Part shown: in pieces, positions 27,910 to 47,069 of the stretch
Layout of the letters: each line of letters opens with the position of its first letter
Position numbering within the stretch: the first letter of the stretch is position 1
NCBI GenBank assembly: GCA_020536535.1
Contig: JAHLWZ010000110.1
Span: 1 to 47,069 of the forward strand
From: Pelomyxa schiedti
Lineage: Eukaryota; Protista; Evosea
DNA: 47,069 bases
Direction: 5' to 3'
Notes under the pieces: model-generated
Databases searched by the model: none
What the model saw: only the letters and a program-made list of their open reading frames with translations
Told to the model about the DNA's origin: nothing
Made by a program: the position numbers and the translations under genes

Positions 27910-30900
27910 ATGAGCGTAGAAGGGAAAGGGAGTGTGACGGGTAAGGAAGATGCGACACAGATGCAACCCCACGCAGATCCAAAAGAAATCTCGGTTGTGG
28001 CTCCTAGTGATGCTGCAGTCAGCACTGCCGTGAAAAAGGAAGTACAGCCAGAACATACCCTGATCGCGGTAGAAACAGCAAAGGAGGTGCCAGTGAAATT
28101 GGAATCTGTCAAGGCGGAGACTCCCCCTGCCGAGATTAAAACTGAGCCTGAAGCAAACGCTCCGGCAGAAGTAAAGCCTGAAGTCGCACCGCAGGTCGAA
28201 AAACAACCAGAGGAATGTCAGCTCAAGCAAGAAACTGCAGAAAATTCCGTGCTTACAAACGATGAAGCTGCTGCTTTCTTTTCAGTTTCATTCCTTTCTC
28301 TTCCTTTTTCTTTTTAATCTGTACACCAGAAGTATTTCTCGGAGTCACAAGGGCAGGACACTGAATACCTTCAACAACCTTCCTTTATGCAACCTGGGGA
28401 TGCTTCATCCTCGGCAGTACCTATTCCCTTTGGGTATCCCTTTTCTCCCTTTTCTCCAGTGGGTTATACTCCAGGAATGCCAGCTATGACCCCATATCCA
28501 CCAATGTCAATGCGACCAATGCCCGGCTCAACTCCCCCTACTCCTCAACCTAGTAGATCACTTTGGGTTGGTAGTTTGCATCCAGAAACGACAGACGACG
28601 AACTACGTTCAACTTTTTCTTCTTTTGGTCTCATTGACAGTGTAAAAGTATTGTACTCCTGGTGCAGAATAAAAACTTACATTTTATAGTTATTACCTCA
28701 GAAAAATTGTTGCTTCATAAAGTTCGAAGACATTCCCTCTTGTATTCGTGCCTACCATGCTATGCAAGGACACTCTATTCATGGTCAGCCGGTCAAACTT
28801 GGCTGGGGAAAGGTAACCCTTCTTTTCTTACAAACTTGACCCCGTAATCTTTTTATAGGCAGACCCCAGTGATGACAAAGTACCACCTCCTCCATGCAAA
28901 AATTTGTGGGTGGGAAATGTTCATCCTGATGCCACAGAAGAAGAATTGCAACAAATTTTCCACCCTTTTGGACAAATAGAGAGGATCCGTGTTCTACCAA
29001 CAAAAAACTGTGCTTTTGTTAACTTCGCATCAGTTGAGATGGCAATAGTGGCAAAAAGTAAGATGCAAGGCAAGATGTGCCATGGGTTACCACTCAAGAT
29101 TAATTTCGGAAAGGTATAGATTTGTTCAAATAGAGTATGCTAAATTTTGTGTAGGACCTAACCACTTCTCAATATTCAACTATGCCATCGAAATTTCTCA
29201 AGGCTGAGGAGCTTCCACCTCCAAGGGTTCCCCCGCCTCAGGGTGGGTTCTTTCTTTTCCCTCGTTAACACTAAGACAATTTAGATAAAGATGTAAGGAA
29301 TGTGTTAGAAAAGATGGCCGAGTTCGTTGTTCGCGATGGGATTTCTTTTGAAGAAATGATTATTACTAAAGAGAAAGATAATCCAAAAATGAGCTTTCTT
29401 TCTCCAACAGACCCAAATCACGCCTATTACCGGTGGCGTGTCTTTGAACTAACTGGTGTGGCTCTTCCCAATTTCTCAAAATGCATAATTCCAATCCCTC
29501 TTGCAGAAAAACCCAATGACTTGCAGAGTGGTACCACCCTAACCCTTCCAGGCACTGGCGTTAACACAACAGCTACTTCAAAGTTAACCTCTAGTGATAC
29601 TCCTGCTGTTGTCCATGCACCTCCAGCGATCCAGACTGTGGTATCAACTCCCCACAACTACAAACCCAAAAAAGTCACTGTACAAAGCAAGTACCGCTTT
29701 CAGATGAAGATACAACAGAACTTAAATCCCGCTTAGCAAGTTTGGGTCCCACAAAAGCCTCCATTAAGGTACACTCTGTTGGCTTCGTTTCCATATCTCT
29801 AATTATGTTAAGAATACCAAACACTGGATCATCGACCGACCAAAAAATATTGTTGCAATAGCAAATATTCTCAAAAGCTCAATTGACTCTTCTACAGCCG
29901 TTTTCGATCACAGACTAAATGTTATTTATGTTATAAATGACATTCTTCAGCATGGGTATGGGATTGTATCTCTTTACTCCACTCTGACTATTTCTGTTGA
30001 AGACTTCAAAAGAGGAATGAAAAAGATCTAGACGATTTTAGTGCTGCATTTCACCCTTCACTTGCGCGTATATTCCGTGTATCGTTCAAAGGTGAATCCC
30101 AATCAAACCAGGAAAAGATCCTCAGGGTGCTTCAGATATGGAGTGACAAGGGTATCTATGAAAAAGCATTTGTGGATAGTCTGAGAAGTGGCGCTATTGC
30201 TGCTGATCGGGTGAGATCTCTAAATACTCATGTCATTACGTCACTAATATTCTTTAAGTTGTTACATAAACTTTCACCTTCTTCTCTGCATCTCCAACCG
30301 GGAGAACCATCACCAAAACGCTCCAAAGCACAATTGATGTCAAAGTTTGAAAATTTTATGAGTGAGCTATCAAATCCAAGTAGCATGGAAGTTGACACCC
30401 CAAGTAACCAAAGCCATTCCCATCAACTAACACACCCGCAACAAACCTCTGACGATCAAGAGCCACACACGGGAGAAGGGGGGTTTGGCTTCCGAGGAAG
30501 AGGCAATTTCCGCGGGAGAGGAAGAGGATACAGAGGCAGAGGCATGTTTCCGTCATGGGGCCCCTCATCTGAACCAAGCAGAAATGGTCTGGATGGCCAT
30601 CACTCTCATCACCGCAGTGCTTATCCAACCAGAGAGGACGATCATGATCATGAACGCAGGAGGGAGCATTCTCGTGATGACTACGAGCATGGAACTGACC
30701 ACCGGTCACATTCCAGGTTCACAGTGAATGAGTGTTTTGATATCTCTATTTTTTCCATATTTAACAGTTTCAGGGACCAATCACCGTCACATCATCGTAG
30801 CCACCGGGATACAACCACTTCTGATTCTTTCAGAGATTCCGTGGACAGAGACGATTACAGAAACAAAAGCGAGCACAAGGACAGAGATAGAGACAAAAAC

Positions 30901-31494
30901 AGAGAAAAAGGCCAAATCAGAGAGGACCGTGAAAAGGAGCGAGCCAGTGAACGGGCAAGGGATACAGAGAGAATCGAGAAACACCTTGAAAAGGAAGCAC
31001 AAAGAACCAGAACTGTGGATAGCGAGGAGAGAAGCAAAGTAGTTCTCAAAGCTCAAAGGAGTCTAGATATCCCCAAAGACGAGCCATCTACCACACCCAA
31101 AAAAGAACCCATAGGAACCAAGTCCCACAAGGACCCAACGGAAAAGGAACCACCAAACGTTCCTGCAAAGGCTCCACACCAGCACTCCCCGGACACTGAC
31201 AAAAACCACAGTGACAGTGTACCGGCAGTTCCAACAGCAGAGAAGGAACCCCCCAAAGAAGTTCCACAGCCTGCAGAACCTGACCAACAGCAACCAAAGC
31301 CTAGGGAGCACAAACACCACCATCACCACAAGAAGAACAAAGAGGCCCCACAACCTGGAGACACTGACACACCACAGCCTAAACACAAGGAGCACAAACA
31401 CCACCATCACCACAAGAAGAGCAAAGAAGCTCCAGCCGAAGAAAACGCTCCACAACAAACCACTACAACCACAACACCTAACACTAAAAACTAA
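27910..31494 (+). CDS. RRM-RRM-SURP-CID RNA-processing protein (U2SURP/SR140- or CHERP-like)
   Basis: RRM1 SRSLWVGSLHPETTDDELR; RRM2 NLWVGNVHPD...CAFVNF...LKINFGK; SURP LEKMAEFVVRDGISFEEMI...HAYYRWRV; CID RLNVIYVINDILQH...VLQIWSDKGIY; RGG and RD/RE-rich low-complexity tail. Confidence 0.82.
31305..31420 (+). repeat. 32-bp coding direct repeat (EHKHHHHHKK twice)
   Basis: GGAGCACAAACACCACCATCACCACAAGAAGA occurs at 31305-31336 and 31389-31420. Confidence 0.9.
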
Positions 31495-31578: not shown

Positions 31579-34500
31579 TTAGTGTTTGCTGGGCTTCTTG
31601 ATAAGAAGTGCAACCTCCTCAAGTTTCACAACTTCACACACAGACTAAAAGAGAGGCCACTTTGTTAGAAGGATGCAAACAAGGAAAGAAATTACCTTGG
31701 CAATTCCCTTGGCACATTTGATGAGGTTGGACTTGGCTGTTGGGTCGTCATTGACACTGGCTGCTTTGACTGCACACAAGATTTTCAGTTGCACCGAGAA
31801 GTTCTGTGCAGCACTGCACCAGCTTAGTATCTGTTCTTGTGTGCGGGGGTCTTGGCTGCAAGGGAAGTAAGGCAAATGGGGATGGTGAAGCGAGAAAGAT
31901 TTTTTACCAGCTGGCTGCACGTTGTTTGGCCTGCTCAATGAAGGTCTTAACCAATTCACCGATTTTCTTGCTGGCATCCAGTATTCCCTGTCTATCCTTG
32001 CTCTTGGCAGACAGTGCCAGCAAGGCAATAAACTCGGCAAGGGTGGAAGCAGTGCCCATTACAGCTGTCTGGAACCGGTTGATTTCTTTCTTATGGAACC
32101 AGATTACGTTACCTTGGGGGTATTTGCTGAAGACTGTGAGACCTGTAGCTCGATAGAATTTGCCGCTTGCATAATCTCATCCTGGGCCATTGCAGGTGTC
32201 TAAGGTGCTCAGTTCTCAGGAAGAGGGAAAAAAGTGGAAAAACCATGAGAGATTTCTTTTTGCGCTCCTCCTCTTCCTCTAATCTTCTTCTTTCTTCTTC
32301 CGCTCGCTGGGCCATACTATCTAGCTCTGAGACTATGGAGTTGGCAGCACTCTTAATTTTGTTAATACACGTGTCACATTGAGTCCTATCCGCACTAGAA
32401 GGTGTGTGCATGTATTCTACTATAGCCTTGGGGATAATTAATAACCTGTTGTATGGAGGGAAAAGGGAAAACCTGGGTAAGTTGAGGAATGCCTCTTTCC
32501 AGTGTGGCTGCATGCATAGTTACGTTCGTCTGCGCTGTAGTATCTGGAAGAGAAGCGTTTTTCACTACCGCCGAGTGTAGTAAGGCTTGGGAAATTGTCT
32601 CCTCCAACGAGTTCAAGCATGTTTCCGCCGCCTGGTGGTCGATAGGGTGATTCGTTGTTGTTGCTACTTCGGCAAGAGCACTAGAGAGCTTAGACACGGC
32701 AGTACCAAGTTGCTCGCCAGTTGTACGGATGATGTCTTCTGTTGTGCCAGACATCCCAGCCATTAATTTGCTTGCTATATCGGCTGCAGCCCCCGCAACT
32801 TCGGAAGGATTGTGTTCTGAAAATAGAGGTCAAAAGGGGGAAGAACGAATGTAAAAATACCGGAGGGCTCCTGGGTTTGCTTCTTTAATTTTGACAGTGC
32901 AGGCAGCAGATCTACAACAGGCTGTGGGGGGGCAGGCATTTTGGCGGTCTGTTGCTCAACTACGGCTACTATGGCTTGCAATTTCTTGTGGTTTAATGCA
33001 AGGTCCTTTGGTGTGCCAGTGGTATTTGCTTCCTTCAACTTCGAAGACTGTAAAAAAACGCATTCAGTTCAGTGAACTCTCAAAAAGTAGAGAGGAGAGA
33101 TACGGCATCAATCATCATCGGGAGAAGTTTTTTAAGGGAATCTTGAGGAGCAAAACATTCCAGAAGTTGCTCATTGGAGGTTTCTAGGGCCTTTGCCATG
33201 GCTGGGGGGAGGGTTGTGCCAGATACAAGACAGGTTTGCAGGGGCTCAACCATCTTAGGAGATTTCAAAAAAAAACTAGGGGAATATGTGAATACCTGGC
33301 TCACATCGAGTGCAATCTGTGCGGAAATAGGTGCAAAAGTAAGGGCATCTGTTTTGGCCATTTGATTTACACAGTCAATGTACTGAGGTCCGAGTGCCTG
33401 GTGAAACATTGGTGATTTTTTGGAGACGAACGGGGAGAAGTACATACAAGGAGAGTTTGAGTGGCATCCCGCTTTGTTGTGAGAGAGGGATGTGATAAAT
33501 CTGCAACGGCCTGTTGCACAACACAAGCACATTGCAAAACTTGGGTACCCGTGGCATTAGAAGGATGTTGGAGTTTGGCGCACATTTTATTCAGATCATC
33601 CATAATTGCAGAATTCTTAACAGGTGGAAGTTAAATACTGAAAAGCGGCCACAAAGAGAAGTACCAGTTTCTTGACTGCAGGAACCTTACTATCATCAAC
33701 AGAAGGAGCCGACATCATTCCAGAGAACTCTTGTACGTGTCCTGCAAGCTTAGCTGTCAAGCTCTTCATTTCTTCAGCTTGTACTGGACTGGCAAAGGTC
33801 ACGGCTCGAGCACCCAAGTCCTCAGCATGTGCAAAAGCAATTTTCAGTGCCTACTAGAGATCAGTCGTGGTAATGGTGAGGTTTGTCAACCTCGGCGTGA
33901 TTCCTTGCTTGCATTACTTGTTTATGTTGCAGGGCACTAACAAGTTTGTCCATTTGGCTTTTTATTTGACCAACAATAACCAACGGTGTATCTGACAATT
34001 TAATTGTATCAGTTAACATAGGCTTCATTTCTCTGGAAGGTCGTGAGGTTAAAAGAGGGAAAAAAAAGTAAGAACCTAATAATGGCTTGAACTTGTACAG
34101 TGGAAACGGGTGTTATTTTTGCAGAATCAACCATCTTCTTGAATTCTCCAGAAATCTGATGAATGTTACAACTCATTGTAACCAGAAAGCAACCTTTTGC
34201 AAATCTTTGGTTGTTTTTTTCAGGGCCAGGGTTTTGAGAACAGGGGTCGCAGGGCTCTCCACAAGAGAGTGTTCAATTGTAGTTACAGCCGATTGTAGCA
34301 TTTCGAGTTGTTCTTGCTGGTAGACGCCTGCACTACTAGAATATTAAAAAGGGTCCAGGTTTTTTGTGTGCAATACGTAGGAGGTGAACTCAATGCGGTC
34401 GAGAGTGTTGTTAAAGAATCCATGAACGAAGTTAGAGAGGGTTTAGAGCTGCAGCAATCTGTAAGTGAAGAAATGGTAGCAAGGGCCTGGAGTGAAATGA

Positions 34501-37500
34501 GGAATGAAATGAACAGTTGAATAAAGATTGACTTACCTCTGGGAGAGAATTCCCAGATAACGCAGCTTGCACTTGAGATGGGAGTGCCTTGTGACCCTCC
34601 TCCACAAGTTTGCATTCGTGAAGTAGATGGACTTTCCCAACTGGGGTAACCACCGCTAAATCGGCTTCCATTCTATTCACGTGGCTTGGTAAAGTGAATC
34701 AGTGAAGAGAACAGGAACCTTGTCAAAACAAGTTTCTTCGAGAGAGTCTCTCGAATTTCGGGAAGAAGCTTATTGGCGATTTTAGCATCCCGTGCTTTTA
34801 GACTGGCCCCAAGTTCGGTCAGTTGGGTAATCAATGAAGAATTGAATCCCATGAGAGCGGTATAAGGATCGGATATACAATTTAAGCATCTGTCTTTCGT
34901 TAGAGAAAGAAAGGGCAGAAAAACCAGCAACCTTGCAGCGACCAGTGAAAGTGCTCGGTACTCTGCTTGTTGATTGGTGTCCTCAGGGTGGGCCATCACA
35001 CCTTCCGCAATACTAACCAATTCTGCGGCTAGATGGCTGAGTTGATCTGCAGCAACCTTAAGTTTGGACTTTTCTTCAGAATTTTTGCTCTGTTTGGCCA
35101 AAGAGTAGGCCAAGGCTTTCTGTGCAGCAAAATTGGAATGAAGTTGTGTGGCGGCATGAAGAAAATCAGCATTGTTGCGTGAAAGAGCGGCAGTCAGGAG
35201 ATCCGTTATATTGGTAAGGCAAGAATTGGATCTGTTATCAACTGGAACCACATGTGAGGAAATTGTGAGAGCCTCTTCAGCTGTTGCTATCAACATATTC
35301 AGTGCCTGTACTTGGAATGAGGTTTTTTGTTTTTTGTTTTTCTTCAAGATCGGACCTCAGAAGAATGACAGGTGAGGAAGTCTTTTGCAGCAACAGGGAT
35401 TGCTTTAGAGGACTTGTTGAGACTTTCGGCCAGGGTGAATAGTTCTACTGACTTCAAAGGATCAACACATGAAACAGCCATACTAGCAACAAGAGCTGCT
35501 TGTTGCTTTAGCAAATTGCTCGCTTTCTTTTGGCTGCTACTGACAGTGGCGTCATCACTTAAGAGGACGTTTAGTTGGAGAAGGGATAGCGAAGAGTACT
35601 TAGAGCGGGCAGCGTTGATAAGCTCAGCAATTTCCATATCCAGTTCTTTGTTGATTTGACGAGCATTATCTTCAAATGACTCTGTCACGCTCAGAATATC
35701 ATCCACAAGGCGTTTTGCCTTGGATATCTCACCTGAAAGCAGGTTCTAGAGGTTTGAGCATTAAAAAAAAGTATGGCTTGTCATAGATGCGCACTATTGG
35801 TGTGGCCTGTAAGGTTTTGGGTGTGACACTCATTTCAGTTGCAAGAGCTGCAACTAAAGGTGTCTTGGCATTGCGTTTCACTAGAGCGACAAAATCGGTA
35901 ACTTGTGTATTTAGCTCGTTCCATGTGTTTGCAGCGTCAGTTGCTTGATTTGCCATTCGAGCGCGTTCATACTATTGATAATGACTTTGTGATAAGTACA
36001 ATAAAAACACACATTTTCCAAGAGGTTGACAATTGTAGGCACTGCCATCAAAACTTGAGCACTAGAACTTGTACACAACATCATAGAGTGTAATGCATTA
36101 TTTCCTCTGCTGATTACATCTTCTAACTCACTGGTAGATGCCCCAGACCGAGAGAAAGTTGTAAGTTTCTGAGCCACATAACCCAAGTCCGTTATCGCTG
36201 AAGCAAGGAGATCTTTGTGTGCAGGGTCTAAATCTGAGGTGCACAGAGTTTGAGCCAGACCGAGGAGCTCACGGGCTTGTCGAGAAGTTTGTCTGGGAAA
36301 AATTAGATTGCCAACATAACCATAAGAGAAACCGGAAATTTTCTGCAGATGGGTTGGTCTTTAAATTGGCCAAACTATCTTTAAAACTGGTGACAACTTT
36401 GATTACATCGGAGTCTTTTGGGGGAGGCAGGCATATATTAGTAATGTTGTTGCACATTGTCCCTAATGTAGCCAGTGTGGCTGTGGCTGTTGCCTTTGTT
36501 GCGCTAGTTGGGGTATTGCAAACAGAGGCAATTTGTGGAATGAGTGTCGCGGAGACTTTAGTGGGATTCTCTAAAATCACTGGTTCACTCAGAGTCTGAG
36601 GGGGGAATAAGATCAATCTAAAGGAAAGGGAGTACTTCAGCTAGTGATGAAGCCAGTAGGTAGTGCTTTTTAATATCGTGATGTAATTCTTCAGCAAGTT
36701 GGGAGACAAGATGGTGTGGTGTTGCTTTGTCAATTGTTTCAATCATTTGTGTGAGTTTCTGGCAGCTGACTTGAATCTGTAGTTGCTTTAGAAGGCGCAC
36801 TTCCAGTAAGAACTAACATGTTTATCTAAGTCGGCAAGCTGTGCTTCTAGTGGAGAGCGATATGCACTGACAAAATCACTGGAATGAGTTTTAATGTTTT
36901 TTAGTGCCACAGCACACAACTCCTACGAAAAGTTATGTTTTTTACTTTATGTTCTACGAACCTGTGCAGCAGAATCATCTGGATTTACTAGAAGACGAGC
37001 AGAGGCTTCTTTTGCCTCTTTGGCAGAAGCAAGTAACTGCATCTGTATTTCAGATACATACTTCGCTTCATGTGGCCTTAAACTTGATTCTTGCCCATGA
37101 CAAAGAAGAACGATACGCGGGATTTGTTCTTCGACAAGTGTTGCAATCCTGTGTCAATGTAAGAAGTACAAATGAGTATTGGGAGAAACCTGGAATTCAG
37201 AGCATTCAAATCCCCATTTTTCAAACTTTCTGTTGCTCTGCTTACTGTATCATTGATGGCATCTTGGGTAGACGGGATCATCTCTGAAATTGGAAGAATG
37301 GCACTAACTATCTAAAAAAAAACCGGTAATACTAAATGTGTGATTGTGGGGAATTACCTCAGCATTAACAATACTTGCTTTGTGGAGATTGGTATGCAAG
37401 TCTTTCAATGCAGCAGTGTCTCCCTGAAGCGAGGATTGGGTAGCTGAGCAGATAGGCTTTGTCAGGTGGGTAAGTGTTGTCAAATTTGTTGTCACGTCAG

Positions 37501-40500
37501 GCTTTTGTGATAGTGCTTTGGCAGCAGACGATTCACGAACCACCAGTGCGGGGAGTTGGCCAGCAACACCCAGAGCATCAGCATGTCCTATGAGGAGGTC
37601 AAGAGAACATTTCAAGTGTTTTATAATATACTGATTACGGAAAGAGCCTCCAAATCTTCCAAAGAGTGTTCCATAGCCGTGGCTATAAGAAGGAGATTTT
37701 CTTTTGGATCTTCCGACTCAAGTGTACCTGTGTGGCTTTTAATATTTTTTTTTGTCTCGATGTTTTGTTGCCACACCAGCTTTTCCTTGGGCAACACAGG
37801 CCAGCTTCCCCAGAGATTTTTGAGCAGCGGAAATTTCATGAACAAGGTCTTTAATTTTAGCAGAATCGGATGGATCGCCACAAGCAACGAGGAAAGTACT
37901 AGACACTTTACTCACGTCACCTGTAACACATTCCAAAGAGCCAAGAATCTACAAAAACTGTGAAGGATTTTTATGATAGTGGGAGGCTACATGTTTTTTA
38001 TAGCTTGGGTCCACTGAGCACTCTTCAGCAATCTGAACGGTGAGTGCGAGAGATTTGACCATGCTGTCTATATTATTAATAGCCTCGTTTGCTTTATCTG
38101 TATCGGAAGAGACTTGGTCTTTTAATGCTTCTAGTGCTTTTTGGAGGGAATTCACTGCAAAACTATGAGATGAGAATAAATAGATGGAGGAAAATAACAT
38201 TTTAGTAGAAGTTTATTTGCAGCCTCAGGCATTACACAAGCTAAAATGGAAATGGCATCAGATCTGGCAGAATTAAGAGCCTTTGCAAGTTCCCTTTTAC
38301 TCGATTTGCTGCTGGGATGGGATTGATATTTAGCAATTGCTTTTGAAATGGAAGAAGGCCAGTCATTGAGGCGCTTAGTGAGAGTAGTGATTGTGGCTCT
38401 GAAAAGTCAAATATGTAAAGAAGTAACGCAATGGAAACCGTTTCATACTTAGTTTGTTCATCATCTGACACTTCAGCAAGTGCTTTTGCATATTTAGTGT
38501 ACTTGCCAACCAGCCCACTGAATTGCTTTTTAATGTTGGTTATGTTGGAATTACATGATGGAGTTCAAATGCAAACCTCTGTAAGTTTGGCAGTTTTTTC
38601 AGGGGAGGGGAGTTCTGCAAAATTGTGAATAACCAGATCAATTTCTTCCATGAGATTTTCAAGTTCTGTAGTAACAGGAAAGGCTGTTACAATGAGCTTT
38701 TTTGTTGAAAGACGTAAATTAGGACATTCCATTTCGATTACAAGTATACCTTGTTGAGTTTCTTATGAGTGTCATTTAATTCCTTTTCCAAGCTTTGTTT
38801 CTTTTGAGGTGAGAAGGAAGAGGTCGACGAAGCGGAGGTATTAAATATTTTTGCGGATGAGTGCATCTCTTCTGCAGTTGATGCAAATAACTTCTTGTTT
38901 TCTGGTGGCCTGTTTTGAGAAGAAACAACCATGCTTAGCATTGAAAGCATCTCTGTAACGGCTGATGCTTGCTACTTAAAGTTAGGCAGATGAAAAAGCA
39001 CCTAGAATAGAACTTTGAGAGAACTGCAGGCATCAGAGTGGTTGGTTCCCGTAACTGCAACCTTGGTGGCTTCTAGAATAGCTGAGGATTGTTCAAATGT
39101 ATCCAAAAGTTTTGCTGTGGCATCACTTGCTATACTTTGTGCTACAGCCCTGACATCATGAGTGAAATAAGTTTCAAGAATGGCGTTACATTTTAAGGGT
39201 TTTTGTAGCCTCACGGACGGCAGTTTCTGCTTCTTTTTGAGTGGCTGCTCGCCCATAGTTCTCGTCTATCTTCTCAGCACATAACGCTATTACCTCCGAG
39301 GTGCCAGCAAGAGTGGCCCTATGTCCCTCAGATGGAGAAAGGGTTGTTCCAATTCGAACTATGGAAGAAAAGGCTTTGATGTCTCCATCAACAACATCGC
39401 TGGCGTCGTCAATTTTTGGCTGATTGTAGGTATCAAGTACAGCTTCAAACCTAAAAGGTGTAAAGAAGGAAGACTTTAATATAGGAAAAGTTGTACTTTT
39501 CAATTTGTGATCTGGCAAGCGTAGCAGCAGCTAAGAGATCGCTGTCTGATGGAGATGCAACAAGGGACGCAAGTTTATTGGAAACGGCAATAAGTTTAGA
39601 AGATACTGTCTCAACTTTATCGATATCTCCCGTCTCAAGTGCTTCAACAGAAGAGGAATATAGCTCAGATTCCAGTTCAGTCAATTCAGCAAGAATACTC
39701 TCCACTTCAGGGAAGGTACAACCCAACTCGGCTGCTTCTTTTTGCAGTTGCTTCACACACTCGCGTTGCTCTTCCAATGTTTGGGCAACTGTTGCAGAGG
39801 CAGAATCATTAGCACTGCTATCGAGCCGGGAAACGGCAGAGACAATACTCTTCAAGGCATCCTCCAGAAGTTTGGCACAAACAAGGACACGCTCCCGTGG
39901 ATTCATATGGGCAGGCATTGGAGTTGTGGCGGCGTTCAAAAGTGGCCTAAGCTCTTCAATTGCCGTGTTCATTCTACGTTGTAGCTCAGAGTCACTAGGG
40001 GATGCTCTTAGAGTAGAAAAGGATGAAGTAAGATTGCGGTTGGCTGCTTCCAAGGCAGCCAAGAGCTTGTTGCGGAAACGTTTTTCGCGTGGATTTCTAT
40101 TTTGGTTAAGAAATAATAACAAAAAATTCTTAGGTACACGCAAGACTCCACAATGTGCCTTGATACCAACATATGTTTTGGTAGCTGAATGGCGAGCTGA
40201 GAAGCGGCATAGCCTGCTTTGTCACTTCTTGCCTGACCTTGTTTTTTTCCCTAGTCAGTATTTTTCCCCTTTTCTTTGCAGCTGCAAACCTGCACAACAT
40301 TCGTCTTGTAAAACTGATAAATGTCCAAGAATGTCTTTACAACTGTTCTCAATAAATTGCATTGGGTTCCCTAGAGAAGCCATGATCATCTGCAGTTGAT
40401 TTCAGGAAAGTAGACTTCACAAACTTGACGAAAAATAACACTTACCTGCTGATTCCCTGATTGCATCTTTGCCAACAAAGGATTTATTTCATCAAATGAG

Positions 40501-43500
40501 GATGTGTTCATTCTCATGAGTTCTTGAATATGTGCTGTAGCATCACTAAGCCATTGTTGCTTGCTAGGATTAACGATTCCAAGCAACTCAGATAAAGCCA
40601 TTTGCCTTTCTGCAATTTTCTTCATTTGAAGCAGCAACTATAAAATCGTCAACTACAAAAGGGATGGGGTTTATGTGATGACCTGTTTTGCTCGTTCAAG
40701 ATCTCCCCTTTTAAGAGCATCCTGGAGTTCAGCAGATAACTGATCCATGAGAACAAGATTATTCATGAATTCTTCCTATGGAGAATGAAACGGGGTTTGT
40801 TTGGTATCTTATCCAGTACCTCCAGTGGTACAATTTGTGATACTAACAGTTTTATTTCTGTCATTGATGCTTCTAAAGTTCTGTGTACGTTATCGTCTGA
40901 AGGAGACGATAGCAGAGCATTCGTTGCTTGTGACAGGACAGAGAGTAACTGAGGTAGTCGAAGGCTAATTTTATTGAGAAGGACCTTCCGCTCTGGTGGT
41001 GTGCTGGAGAAATGTCAAAGTAATAGGGAGAACAAGAGGAAAAAATACAATTGTGCATTAGATATAGTTATTGCCACCATGGTCTCCAAGTCAATCAAAT
41101 CGCGGGTACAGGCTAGTGCAGCTCCTGCTTGATATTTGGCTGGTGGGAAGAATTCGCAACTTCCAATGCTTGTTTCCAATCGGTGGAGTTGATGGAATAG
41201 AGATACACCAGAAAATATTGCCTTGGAGAAATTAGATTTTGTGTACTTTCTCTCTTATAACAACCTGATCTGTGGTGTTCACAACAGAAGCACACTTCTC
41301 ACGCACTGTTCCAAGCAAGTCTCTTAAACTCTTGAAGTGGGAATAAGAAGTTGCATTCCTTTAATGACTGATACCTGCACATAAGTGGCACTGGACAGAG
41401 CACTTTTTGTAGAGTTTGCAACTATACGCAGAAAGGCTGAAAGGTCTTGACTTGTTTCTTCCAACATAAGAATATATTCAAGGTCTTCTGTGGAATCACA
41501 AGCCCACCTAAAAATGTCAACGACAAATTGTAAGTTGATTTCTATACCCTGCAATAATCATCTGATGTTTAACGAAGGTTGTGAACAACTCTAAAAATGA
41601 ACTAGCTTCCTGGTCATTTTGTGATGAAACAGAAGCTAATAGTTTTTGAGAGAAAATGTCAATTTGCGCCATGTTGAATATAGCAGCAACACCACAGTTC
41701 ACGATCTAGATTCAAGTAAATAGGAAATCACACATTTATGAGATACCGTGGAATTTGCTGCATTTAAATCATGGAGAAGCTGAAGAAATTCAGTTTGTGC
41801 TGAAGTATCATCAGGATAGTCGGTAACAGCTTGCAGTGACGAGGCAATGAGGATTGGAGCATGCTCGATTTTCTTCGCGGCAATGGTAATCTTTTTCCTG
41901 TAAATGGAGGAGATTTTTTTTTCCAATAGACCTGATTCTGGATGTTCGGGTCTTCATGTGTCATGGCCATGATTTCAGCTAACTCACCATGCTTAGGAAA
42001 TGTTTCCCAAAGAGAGCTGACTAAGCTATCCATTTCTTCCTGAAAAATCTTAGAGCAAAATTCACACACCACTCATACTTTGGGTTTCCCTCTCATCTGT
42101 TTCAGTGCTTGGAGTTTATTTGCAATGCCAAAAGTTCTTGTGGTAATATCTGGCAGCTTTACGGAATGGGTTTTGATGAGGAGGTCCATAGCCTTCAGGA
42201 TATTTTCAATTTCGACGTTGTAAGCAATCGAACTTGGTGTTGGAATAAGCTAACTATGTGTCAGAAAGAGAGAGAAATCAACACCAAATACACCTGTTGA
42301 AGGTACAAGCTGACAGTCTCCAGATTCGTTGCAGTGTCTAATAATGTGAGTGCACGGTACTCAGTGGGACAAACAGCAGCCAATAATTTGGCATTCTCAG
42401 CTTGGTTTGGTATCATATCTTCCAACTCCCTGAACGAGTGTTATTTCGATTTCAAAATAGGTGACAAGTTACATCATAAGGTCGACTAAGGTTTCATCTG
42501 CTGTTGAATAAGCTTGAAGCATATTTTTCAGGGTTGAGTTCAATTTTATGGTATCAGCAAGCACCTTTTGCAGGAGTGAATGTTGTTACAGTTTTTCTAA
42601 TTCATGATGCATACCTGTTCTTCACTCCAAACAAACCTTCTCCATGCTGGGAGAGAAGAACAAGAGGCACAAATAGCGTTAGCATTTTCTCTCAAAGAAT
42701 CCATGTGGGAAAGTAAATTTTCAAATTTAGAGCTAGAAGTTTCGTTAGAAACAATATTCTGTTTATTGAACCTACGAATCTCTGACTGCCTCATCAGTAA
42801 CCCCACTAAGTTCGACAATAAGCCTCTCTAGTTTCGCGACAGCAGATTTTACACCCTTTTTTTTTTTTGTTGGTTGGTTGTTGGTAGTTTAAATGGTAGC
42901 TGAAACCTTGATATCCTTAACTCGGCTAAAACGTTTATGGGCAGCTTTGCCAATGAGTAAAATGTGGTTGGCGCGGGCAGATATATTTACTTTGGCTTTT
43001 TCAATTCTCGGAGATTTTTTTGTCCGTGCAGCCCTTCAATAAATTAAAAAAATTAAAGGCTTTAACTTACAAACACACATTGCAATTTCATCAATAACAA
43101 AAGTGAATTTCTTTGTATAATCACTAGCTAGCAACTCTGGAGAGGAAGACCATGCAACAATTTCAGTGAGGTTCATCTGTTAAAGATAAAGGTCATTTTG
43201 TTTCTTAAGCTTAATGCAATTAATGCTTACCACAAGCTGGGTAACAAAATTTTCAAATTGCATAGTATTTCCAGTGGTAAAGAGTTCTTTGGATTCAGCC
43301 TCAAGTGCAGGAAGAGAAATAGTTTCAAGAAGTTGCATCACTTTTGCTTTACACTCTTCATCCTGTTTTGTGTGTCAGTTTAACTAGAGTTCGTAAACAT
43401 GATACTTTGATCTGGTTAATTACGTAGCCAAGATGCGACTTGAAAGCAGAAATTGCTACACCACATTTTCTATTGTGCTTTGACAGGTCTATTGCTGTCA

Positions 43501-45721
43501 AAGCTCCCGTTGGATAGTGTTGAAGCTCATAGAGTAATCTAGGTGATTCAAAATTTAGTGTTACTTGTATTAAAAAAAAGGGAACAACTGTGCAGCAAGT
43601 TCCAGAGTTTGTTGGTCAGAATTAGTTGTAATGATCCGTTTTAATAATTTGGCTTGCATCACAGTGTCTTCAATAAGATTTGTAAGGTTTTGCTGAGAAA
43701 AGTCTTAGAAGAAGAAATTAGTTGGAAACTACAAGACTCAGGTCAGACTGAGATTGCAAGCACTCCTTCAAGGCCAGGACCACAGAGGAAGTTGCCTGAG
43801 TAAGCGAATCGGTGTAAAATTTTAGCTCTTGGGCACATTCGGAACTCCCGTCAGTCAGCAGGCTCTTTGCAAGGGCCAGAAGTCTGAGGAAGGTTAAGAG
43901 GAAAAAAAATCTGGAGTAATGAGTACTTGTTCAAATTCTTCATTCCTAGCCGAACTGATAGGATGGCCTACATCGGTACAAGTGTGAGTCGAAACCAAGA
44001 ACGGACTTGGGATACCTGTTGGTTGTTTCCCGCTTCAATGCTCTGCAAAACTGTGTGCAGTTCTTGGTCGCAATTCAAAAGAGTTCCACTCGTTTGCTGT
44101 TCCCTTGTACCGGAAACGTCAACAAGTTCGCCCACAGATTCATCCTTGTAGATGAAAGAACATTAAGTTAGAAGCTGGGTCTGTAAATAAACAGTTTATA
44201 TACCAAAGTTGCAATGAGTTTGGAAAAATTGTCTGCGTTATATGCAATAAGGCAGTCCACAACTACAGAGAAACCATTTTTTATGACAAGGAACTACCTG
44301 GAATACTTTTACCTTGTTGTATTTCCTCATTCAGAGCATGTTCTTTTTGTCTTGCACCCTCACTTGCAGTTAATAGCATCTTACCTTGAAGGGTATCGTT
44401 ATATGTTGCAGATAGTTTGGTTGAAATTTCGATTTGCTAAAAATTGTAAGCAAAAGTTCATTATTGATGTTTGTAGTGACATTTTCCAATTGATCGTGAA
44501 TTGCTTGCCCACAAGCAATGGCGGCAATGAAGTTGTGTTCGGTCATGGCTTGCTGTAAAGATTCCGTGTGTGCCCGTAGTCCACTGTGCAGGGTCTTCAA
44601 GGAAAAAATTATCTAACAAAAAAAAAGTGGCCATATCCGTACCCTCAAGTCGGATATAAAATCGGCATTTTCCACTTCAGAATCCGTTTCAAGATCCAAC
44701 TGAATCCCAAGGAACATGTTCTTATGTGACAGTCGGGTGGTCTGATTTACAATAAAAAAGGGGGAAAGGGTAGCCTTGGTGGTTACCAATATTATTTCTT
44801 GTGCTTTGCTGGAGAGTTTTCGCGCAATCTCATTTCGAACGTTTTCCAATTCAGTATCATGTGGGGTTTTAATCACACCTATGACACCCCTTAGTAGTTG
44901 CTCAATCTCAGTTTTAAGGGCATTCTGAGCTTCATCAAGCCTGGAGAAGTTTAACCAAAATAGTATTGTAAAGGACACAGACTTGGACTTGACAGAAGTA
45001 TCAACAATAGACCCACTGCGGTCGCTCAAATGGCGTGTCAGCTTCAGAACAGCAGGGCCATAAGAAGTCATCATGTTTTTTAGATCTTCGACATTGCTAG
45101 CAATGCGAGCTTGTTGTATAAGGCGGTTCACTTCATTAGCTTGGTCTACAATCTGGTGAAGGTATCAAGAACGTTTTTGAAAATGATCAACTGACAGCTT
45201 TAACTAATGGCACATCATCCAGAGCAAATGACTTAATATTACTTTGGAGTAAAAGTTGAGAGGCTCTTTGCAGTGTGAGCTTCCCTTCTTTTCCTGTTGG
45301 ATTTGTTTGTATTTGGGCAGCAGCAATTTTCAGCCAATTAATGGAACGCCTGTCAAAAGAATTGTAGGGGTGGGTATTTTCCTCAACAATGGTAAAACTA
45401 CCTTAGTTGTGTGACACATAACAGAAACCTCTCGTTCACGGGATCAGTGAGGTCTCTTGTCTGGAGTTTCTTGGCAGCAATATCACAGAATGTTTGGCTG
45501 GCAGCAGCAATTCTGGAAATTCGATCTGCTGTCAATCCCTCCACCCTCACAGAGTCTCTCTGCAAACGAAAAAAAATAAAAAGAAGTTCAATGAATGCTC
45601 CACTTTTGGTTTGGGTTTGATAGACCCGTCCGGGCATCAGTCAAAAATGCACCTTGCTACGGAGAGAAAACTCCACGAGTTCGCTGACACGGTTGGAAAT
45701 GTCCTCAAGCAGTTGTTCCAT
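31579..45721 (-). CDS. Giant vinculin/alpha-catenin-family helical-bundle protein (dozens of short introns)
   Basis: The start MEQLLEDISNRVSELVEFSLRSK (ATG 45721) resembles the first helix of vinculin/alpha-catenin. The C-terminus EEERRRLEEEEERK...DEIMQAA...AAQNFSVQLKILCAVKAA...LIKCAKGIAK SVCEVVK matches the vinculin tail (QLKILSTVKA). Intervening exons are Ala/Leu/Ser-rich amphipathic helices. Stop TAA at 31579-31581. Continuity was only spot-checked. Confidence 0.75.
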
Positions 45722-45982
45722 TGTGCCGTCGTCTGTTTGTTTGTTTGGCTCTCTATGACACCCCTTTTTTGCGTTCTGCCCTCTCGTTGCCTTCCGCCTC
45801 GAAAAGGTGGGTTTTTTTTTATTTTTTTCGTTTGGTTGCCTTTCTAGATCGCGGGTGCAGGGAAGGGGGGTTTTAATTTATTTGCCGTTCGTGTGAACTA
45901 AAATTGGCTTTTACACTCCTTTGGGTTTTACAGATTTCGTTGGATTCCACGTTGCTGGTGAGTGGGCGTCCGGGCTTAGTTT

Positions 45983-47069
45983 TCATCCAAAGTAGCCAAG
46001 AAGAAGAGCTCCAGCGGCTAGAATCAGAGTTGCAACTGTGAATATGAGAAGATTCCTGATTCCTGTAACCTCTCGGTACCAGAGTATACCCCAAAGGGCT
46101 GATACCACAATGCACAGCTGTGTGAGTGTGAATCCTTGTGACATCTAGGATTTATGGTGAGATTGGGGCAATGGATTGGGTTGGGAAAGGGCTTACTCCG
46201 AGTGGTGATAAGGATGCTAGCATTGCTAGAATGTTACCGGCATTCCAAATAACTCCGGCAAGGGATGCCGGTATAACAGCAACTTTGATATGAAGTGGTG
46301 GAACTTCTACTTTTCTTTTCCAAACACAAACGCCAGTGAAGTAAACTAGAGCGAACAGGAGTGACAGAACAAAGAAGCCGATACCATAGCTTACAGCATA
46401 GGATATCCCTTGCACTGGGCTGTACTCCTGAGCCATTGCTAGAGGTGCCATCGTGGATCCACTGATCACACCAACAGAAAATGCTGCCAGAACGCCATAG
46501 AGCTTCAATCTGGCACTTCTAACCGGAGTGGATTTCGAGGGAGCATTAGGGGAGATGTGTTGTTGGACGGAATTTGCAGCAGGTATTTCTTTAGGGCTTT
46601 CACTTACAGGCGGTGACTCGGCACTCTTTTCCTCCGAGGGAGCTTCCTCAACAGGGTCCTGTTTAGGTAAGGTTTCCGAGTCTGAGGGCTTTGATTCGGA
46701 GTCAGTAGAATGTTTTTCAGCCTCTAATATAGGGGCTGATTCATCCGGCACGGACGCGGGCTTTGGTGGGTTTGGCCTCAGTAGAGCGAGCAAACACACA
46801 CCTGCCTAAAAATAAGCCAAACGTCAACACTTTTCAAATAGTTGTAACTCAACAAAATAATCGAAGCAACGCAGAACAGAAAAGCCATCGATGCAAAAAG
46901 TTAAAATTTAACTTACAACATCACACACTATACAACCAATTTATACTACATTCTTTTCCCTTGGTTTGGTTTTTTTTCCCATCTTCTGGATTCCCTCTAC
47001 CCAGCCTTGAACACCAGAACTGTACACATCCATCGCCAGGTTTAAGGCACTGTGCTCAGTTGTCGTCCC
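45983..47069 (-). CDS. TMEM144: TMEM144-like drug/metabolite-transporter-superfamily membrane protein (5' part outside the window)
   Basis: LYGVLAAFSVGVISGSTMAPL...SYGIGFF...LAGVIWNAGNILAMLA...LCIVVSALWGILWYREVTGIRN, with an acidic/Pro-rich loop between the two halves. Stop TGA at 45983-45985. Confidence 0.75.

Follow-up and report, generated by a model that had tools for sequence, protein, structure and literature searches.

In the stretch of Pelomyxa schiedti DNA analysed here (47,069 nucleotides (nt), positions 1 to 47,069 of contig JAHLWZ010000110.1, GenBank assembly GCA_020536535.1; hereafter the window), we describe what is probably, at about 0.7 by our own estimate, one transcribed minus-strand gene for a giant member of the vinculin/alpha-catenin family. 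The predicted product comprises 3,636 amino acids (aa), with vinculin-type ends on either side of a long helical rod. To our knowledge, the members of this family described so far are compact and comprise 850-1,130 residues, and no published description of a protein like the one from Pelomyxa was found in the literature.

Results

The gene and its transcripts

The coding region is read on the minus strand from 45721 to 31579 and consists of short coding pieces separated by GT...AG introns. It starts with the ATG at 45721 (MEQLLEDISNRVSELV...), and 31579 is the final base of the stop codon. According to an exact mapping of the protein to the genome, the introns measure 38-93 nt with a median of 44 nt, and 69 of the 70 fall between 38 and 59 nt. 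The 71-exon model encodes exactly the public protein KAH3766824.1, annotated as 'hypothetical protein Pelo_1318 [Pelomyxa schiedti]' and likewise 3,636 aa long, which was retrieved by a search with the largest rod exon (exon 53, 34721-35305, minus strand) against 1.84 billion representative proteins.

An independent gene model was derived with a splice-aware dynamic program, for which codon usage and splice-site weights were trained in iterations. The minus strand yielded one stop-free chain that scored 1068 and contains approximately 10.8 kb of coding sequence with introns of 36-93 nt; it starts at the ATG at 45721 and terminates at the stop at 31579. Three block-shuffled versions of the sequence served as a control and scored at most 6.5, with chains of no more than 606 nt, and the opposite strand reached a score of 93. 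The independent model differs from KAH3766824.1 at nine points, all of which are in-frame splice choices. The public sequence was used for all analyses of the whole protein, while the exons of the independent model were searched singly. These data support a single gene with one continuous frame along its whole length, in which no two exons lie more than 93 nt apart. A preliminary description of this DNA, made from the letters alone, had proposed 14.1 kb of same-strand exons at 31579-45721 and, provided that they form one gene, a product of roughly 3000-3700 aa; one minus-strand frame indeed occupies exactly these coordinates, and the actual length lies within the predicted range.

RNA contigs from two single-cell RNA sequencing runs (X1 and X2), generated in the same study as the genome, were placed on positions 40000-45999. 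They contain 15 splice joints in this region, all of the type CT..AC on the plus strand, i.e. GT..AG on the minus strand, and every one of them coincides with an intron of the KAH3766824.1 model. When compared with the dynamic-program model, 13 joints are exact, two shift an exon end in frame, and one adds an exon (42855-42776). The longest covered stretch is that of 41567-43532. This partial RNA coverage demonstrates transcription and splicing on the minus strand, but not a single full-length mRNA; within the 6 kb, no RNA contig was placed over 40800-41400, 43600-44800 or 45200-45800.

It could be argued that the predictors merged two or more adjacent genes of the same strand, for example a short vinculin-like gene and helical-rod genes. 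The RNA contigs, none of which spans more than 964 nt of transcript, leave the mentioned gaps for such a merger, and a dynamic program forced into one frame can bridge genes where splice signals are weak. However, the frame is open across 71 exons, a length that the shuffled chains do not approach, and the largest non-coding gap, at 93 nt, is too small to hold a terminator, an intergenic region, a promoter and a new start. A vinculin head lacking a tail and a tail lacking a head, 13 kb apart on one strand, would also be an odd coincidence. The preliminary description had named transcripts of two or more separate genes as the finding that would speak against it; within 40000-45999, 15 of 15 joints fit the single-gene model. 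We therefore regard a merger of genes as very improbable.

Several details of the RNA and DNA contigs concern single introns. The intron at 42856-42906 (minus strand) contains a run of 13 A, RNA contigs stop on either side of it (at 42907 and 42831), and its joint is the only one of the covered region that is bridged by no contig; in run X3, a match to 42855-42875 only is found in an unrelated DNA contig. The 43-nt intron at 42430-42472 is retained in one contig of run X2 and spliced out in run X1. Run X2 also seems to show a 5' end at 42472, which was considered and rejected, as the loose letters there are those of the template-switch oligonucleotide of the library beside a matching ATGG. We read this contig as unspliced pre-mRNA combined with a strand-invasion artefact and not as a real 5' end. 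At position 44617, an intronic homopolymer is one A longer in a DNA contig of run X3 than in the window; this assembly or strain difference leaves the coding sequence unaffected.

The vinculin-type head

When scanned alone, residues 1-260 match the Pfam family PF01044 (Vinculin) with 54.2 bits (gathering cut-off 38.1; E 1.1e-14) over profile positions 8-242. A search of the Protein Data Bank (PDB) by sequence, with the whole protein as query, aligned aa 2-205 with the N-domain of alphaN-catenin (4ons; E 9.5e-7) and aa 2-239 with vinculin D1 (E ~1e-3). In the D1 alignment, the junction 'iqtNPtgkeg' pairs with 'faDDPcssvk' of alpha-catenin. Judged from these alignments, the first ~250 residues are shown to be homologous to the D1/VH1 head; the structural model of this region is of too low confidence to show the bundle packing. 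The preliminary description had gone no further than a vinculin-like first helix, which is thus confirmed.

The vinculin-type tail and the charged segment

At the other end of the protein, residues 3458-3627, scanned as part of aa 3440-3636, match PF01044 at profile positions 656-828 (E 1.2e-7) with 30.9 bits, a score that is significant but taken alone lies below the whole-protein cut-off. The PDB search by sequence aligned aa 3466-3628 with vinculin tail structures (E 2.6e-4), and tails of talin or alpha-catenin did not appear in it at E<=1. Exon 70 by itself also found vinculin tails (E 0.009), with QLKILCAVKAA pairing with QLKILSTVKAT. The tail motif SVQLKILCAVKAA is encoded at 31759-31797 and corresponds to aa 3582-3594. 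Five helices are predicted after the charged segment described below, according to the secondary structure given by AlphaFold2. Taken together, these comparisons show the last ~170 residues to be homologous to the five-helix vinculin tail. Two talin-associated families touch the same residues: Talin_IBS2B scored 30.6 bits (cut-off 27) on aa 3576-3622 and covers far less of the tail than the Vinculin profile, and I_LWEQ remained weaker than the Vinculin profile with 16.9 bits (cut-off 27.5; E 0.007).

Rod and tail are separated by a segment rich in E, R and K, AQRAEEERRRLEEEEERKKKS, which contains no proline and is part of a helix of 46 residues in the AlphaFold2 model of the C-terminal third (positions 996-1041 of this second model, aa 3432-3477). 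In vinculin, the corresponding position is occupied by a proline-rich hinge that joins head and tail. Both the tail motif and the charged linker preceding it had been noticed in the preliminary description, and both were located in the protein, the linker sequence EEERRRLEEEEE beginning at aa 3461 and lying within 32247-32318.

The rod

The rod alone is longer than all of talin. PF01044 was scanned in 28 overlapping windows along the protein and matched four of them, two at the N-terminus and two at the C-terminus, so that the family is recognised at both ends and profile positions ~270-655 are unmatched in the middle. No Pfam family exceeded its threshold inside the rod in this windowed scan, and the scans of single exons and open segments returned sub-threshold matches only, the single exons being too short. 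The sole Pfam signal of the talin/vinculin families in the rod is a sub-threshold match to Talin_VBS2 (E 0.011-0.021; 15.6-16.5 bits, cut-off 24.2) on a segment that includes LVSIAEGVMAHPEDTNQQAEYRALSLVAARCL, where the talin-1 R3 domain (2l7a) was found by sequence with E 0.12. A two-sequence profile of aa 2650-2925 found nothing among PDB sequences.

The preliminary description had pointed to a bundle-turn motif that recurs along the exons. All six of the quoted motifs are present in the protein (TPHDTE at aa 209, YPDDTS at 932, SPSDSE at 1387, DPSDSA at 1973, NPSAEN at 2380 and HPEDTN at 2761), and the pattern P-x-D-[ST] occurs nine times compared to 1.1 +/- 1.0 expected, an approximately eight-fold enrichment that was reached in none of 1000 shuffles. 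Each occurrence of this pattern sits between two helices in a similar context. A count of internal repeats, which had also been suggested, came out empty: alignment of the protein with itself by BLAST gave no off-diagonal match at E<=1, so there are no internal repeats detectable by this method. A recent tandem amplification as the origin of the rod was rejected on this ground.

AlphaFold2 was run without an alignment on aa 1-1200 and aa 2437-3636, and the secondary structure alone was used. It predicts 49 helices in the first and 41 in the second segment, mostly of 15-45 residues and connected by short loops. These helix lengths and loops fit bundles better than long coiled coils, as far as the models can be trusted. 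In Foldseek searches, the model of aa 1-1200 retrieved full-length vinculin first (E 2e-6), while the model of aa 2437-3636 retrieved autoinhibited talin-1 (6r9t; E 5.3e-4), followed by sponge vinculin, talin and human vinculin. In the feature space of the ESM Atlas, the best named neighbours of both rod halves (aa 260-2200 and aa 2200-3440) are all talin-rod or vinculin clusters with a similarity of 0.90 each, sharing 191-199 of 256 features. These features, together with the Foldseek ranks of low-confidence models, hint that the rod lies nearest to talin rods and vinculin.

A descent of the rod from talin rods, with the vinculin head and tail either acquired or kept from a common ancestor, would make the protein a hybrid of talin and vinculin. 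Talin rod families (Talin_IBS2B, TLN1-like_RS, Talin_R4 and VBS) dominate the ESM neighbours, talin-1 heads the Foldseek list of the C-terminal third, and the signals of Talin_VBS2 and talin-1 R3 in the rod as well as that of Talin_IBS2B on part of the tail point in the same direction. In contrast, no talin rod family of Pfam reaches its threshold in the rod, the PDB search returned no talin chain at E<=1, and full-length vinculin heads the ranking for the model of aa 1-1200, all structural models being of low confidence. Moreover, the bundles of talin and vinculin are alike, so that neighbours in feature space do not separate descent from similarity. We consider talin descent unlikely. The same holds for a farther-reaching proposal, namely a talin-vinculin hybrid with approximately 25-30 force-unfolding bundles homologous to those of talin that is kept in at least one other lineage of anaerobic amoebae, be it as a relic of an ancestry shared by the talin rod and the vinculin bundles or as an 'all-in-one' mechanosensitive actin linker that arose independently in the Archamoebae, to which we would give little credence at present.

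Relatives of the rod

The only relative found is the metagenome contig Ga0079072_1173607 (1,701 nt; JGI sample 3300006589). A tblastn alignment gave 44% identity over 242 aa (aa 2660-2900; E 2e-52) and 35% identity over 338 aa (aa 2891-3222; E 3e-56). The matches lie in two open frames of the contig, broken by one short interruption at most. That a frame stays open at 35-44% identity across ~560 residues argues that the rod sequence is kept under selection in a second, uncultured organism, whose introns are far fewer. Over the same span, 12 introns are present in P. schiedti, and intron density thus differs greatly between Pelomyxa and the nearly open frames of its metagenome relative.

The search of representative proteins with exon 53 returned the product of the gene itself, one metagenome fragment of 268 aa and one spurious bacterial repeat protein. 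A whole-length search among proteins of 2,000-6,363 aa found the protein itself only, as did a version restricted to the head; aa 1-650 yielded no relative among mid-size proteins, and two metagenome scans led to the same contig only, all of these searches being based on a word index or short patterns, for which a blank is weak evidence.

This narrow distribution could suit a lineage-specific helical spacer, unrelated to the mechanics of adhesion. Such a protein would make use of its vinculin-type ends alone, for example as a long static tether of actin to an organelle, the cortex or endosymbionts that does not unfold under force. The rod shows no significant homology to Pfam families or PDB entries and no recent internal repeats, and its only relative among 1.84 billion representative proteins is the one metagenome contig. 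In its locomotion, Pelomyxa, a large and anaerobic amoeba, forms eruptive lobopodia that have no hyaline structures (PMC11673790). Against a mere spacer, the helix lengths and short loops suit bundles over one long coiled coil, the vinculin-type helix-junction motif recurs along the rod, and the neighbours in feature space are talin and vinculin only. A static spacer appears to us an improbable explanation of the rod.

Features and neighbouring genes

The coordinates of all features are compiled in Table 1. The giant gene is boxed in, with a neighbouring gene close at each end. Upstream on the same strand lies a gene for a multi-pass membrane protein with an N-terminal region rich in Ser, Pro and Glu (45986-46805, minus strand), whose 3' end is at ~45986; an RNA contig of run X2 on 45906-45999 represents the 3' end of this gene. 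Downstream, a convergent neighbour (30127-31494, plus strand) is a long open frame rich in Arg, Asp, Glu and His that contains the repeat HKHHHHHKK twice. Its end and the stop codon of the giant gene are 85 nt apart, leaving both genes a very short 3' untranslated region.

Table 1. Features of the giant gene and its product (window coordinates)
Feature	Position	Strand	Basis or content
Whole coding region	31579..45721	-	71 exons, 70 GT-AG introns, coding sequence 10,911 nt, 3,636 aa
Head, similar to vinculin D1 / alpha-catenin N-domain (aa 2-240)	44727..45718	-	exons 1-6; Pfam and PDB sequence matches
Rod (~3,200 residues, aa 241-3454)	32319..44726	-	all-alpha by AlphaFold2 secondary structure
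Talin_VBS2 signal (aa 2725-2772, including LVSIAEGVMAHPEDTNQQAEYRALSLVAARCL)	34955..35098	-	sub-threshold; sole talin/vinculin-family Pfam signal in the rod
Part of rod kept in metagenome relative (aa 2660-3222)	33161..35293	-	tblastn to contig Ga0079072_1173607
Charged E/R/K-rich segment AQRAEEERRRLEEEEERKKKS (aa 3455-3478)	32247..32318	-	between rod and tail
Tail, Vt-like (aa 3458-3627)	31609..32309	-	exons 67-71; Pfam, PDB, predicted helices
RNA-covered stretches	40011-40701, 41567-42831, 42907-43532, 44982-45141	-	spliced contigs, runs X1 and X2

Discussion

The assignment of the Pelomyxa gene to the vinculin/alpha-catenin family is carried by its continuous frame, its spliced transcripts and the homology of both ends. 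Several observations weigh against it. The RNA contigs cover ~40% of the 6 kb examined, with 964 nt as the longest transcript span of any contig. With all 3,636 aa as the query, Pfam gave no Vinculin match at E<=0.1, and the precomputed Pfam field of the protein is empty. In the Pfam and PDB searches, neither vinculin D2-D4 nor talin rod domains nor any solved structure matched the rod sequence significantly, and the tail stops ~20 residues short of the position of vinculin's C-terminal extension. The AlphaFold2 models reach a mean pLDDT (predicted local distance difference test) of 41.9 for aa 1-1200 and 45.7 for aa 2437-3636, and the Foldseek matches have TM-scores (template modelling scores) of ~0.1. 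Because of this low confidence, bundle packing is not established by the models, and the Foldseek ranks are leads and not fold assignments. Likewise, the ESM matches carry low 'recognition' values (857 and 945) and are to be taken as leads.

The preliminary description had viewed the protein as a vinculin with a massively expanded helical-bundle head. The vinculin ends and the all-helical middle stand, whereas a significant match of the middle to D2-D4 was not found in these searches. The structural comparison proposed there ended in a similar way: vinculin and talin rank first, but with the low pLDDT and TM-scores given above.

Assuming that the protein is a giant family member, roughly 25-30 bundles of the talin/vinculin type, with four or five helices each, may be strung together in its rod. 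The tail would bind F-actin and perhaps acidic lipids, and the head could bind an amphipathic helix of a partner by analogy with vinculin D1 and the alpha-catenin N-domain. If a bundle-chain rod, an F-actin-binding tail and a partner-binding head are combined in one molecule, the protein would be a very long tether between actin and a partner. We thus infer a function as a long actin linker. The bundles could unfold stepwise under load, in which case one chain would do the job of talin and vinculin together. The charged helix before the tail would replace the flexible proline hinge, so that head-tail autoinhibition, if existing, would work differently.

Should this reading hold, the vinculin family would admit proteins of a very different scale, with both functional ends and a rod exceeding a whole talin. 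The protein would then be a natural example on which to test how the range of a molecular force sensor depends on its bundle number, and it bears on the question of a shared ancestry of talin rods and vinculin bundles.

The empty result of the whole-protein Pfam scan probably explains the 'hypothetical' label of the public entry. In routine annotation, recognisable domains at the ends of very long helical proteins may go unnoticed, and windowed scans recover them. A survey of the adhesome in Amoebozoa found vinculin to be widespread and reported none in Entamoeba (bioRxiv 10.1101/2020.04.29.069435). As whole-protein Pfam scanning misses the end domains, genes of the kind described here would escape surveys of adhesion proteins across this group.

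Comparison with known systems

An amoebozoan point of comparison is the ESM Atlas cluster 'Talin IBS2B domain-containing protein' with 148 members, mostly from Discosea, which is the best or second-best neighbour of the rod halves (0.90 and 0.89). Its members carry PF01044 Vinculin (38%), Talin_IBS2B (28%) and Talin_R4 (12%), so that the cluster and the Pelomyxa protein, both amoebozoan, mix vinculin and talin-rod signatures. In contrast to the 3,636 aa of the latter, the representative of the cluster has only 626 aa, and the two were compared by features alone. The cluster members may be ordinary vinculins, or else pieces of giants like the present one.

Talin, the long force-unfolding rod of adhesion sites, comprises ~2,540 aa with a FERM head, 13 helical bundles (R1-R13) and an actin-binding I/LWEQ/THATCH end. 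The Pelomyxa protein resembles it in its very long rod of short helices, which is of talin scale or above, and, as leads, in the top Foldseek match of its C-terminal third and the nearest ESM neighbours of its rod. The presumed logic, in which the head binds, the rod bears force and the other end attaches to actin, would also be shared. Unlike talin, it has no FERM family in any Pfam scan and begins with an N-terminus of the vinculin D1 type, I/LWEQ stays below threshold, no dimerisation helix was identified, and the rod contains no talin rod domain above the Pfam threshold. Judged by its domains, the protein is not a talin, in agreement with the contrast to the FERM head and I/LWEQ end of talin that had been drawn beforehand.

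Human vinculin has 1,066 aa, and ctnnA/VinA and VinB of Dictyostelium are further family members (PF01044). Binding partners of the head are talin or alpha-actinin in the case of vinculin D1 and beta-catenin in that of the alpha-catenin N-domain. Compared to these proteins, that of Pelomyxa is 3.2-4.3 times longer (3,636 versus ~850-1,130 aa), its middle is unmatched over the central part of the family profile, a charged E/R/K helix takes the place of vinculin's proline-rich hinge, and the chain ends ~20 residues before the position of the C-terminal extension. In common with vinculin and alpha-catenin, it has an N-terminus of the D1/VH1 type and a C-terminal tail of the Vt type with the QLKIL..VKA motif, is predicted to be all-alpha throughout, and repeats the h-x-[DN]-P-x-D helix junction along its length.

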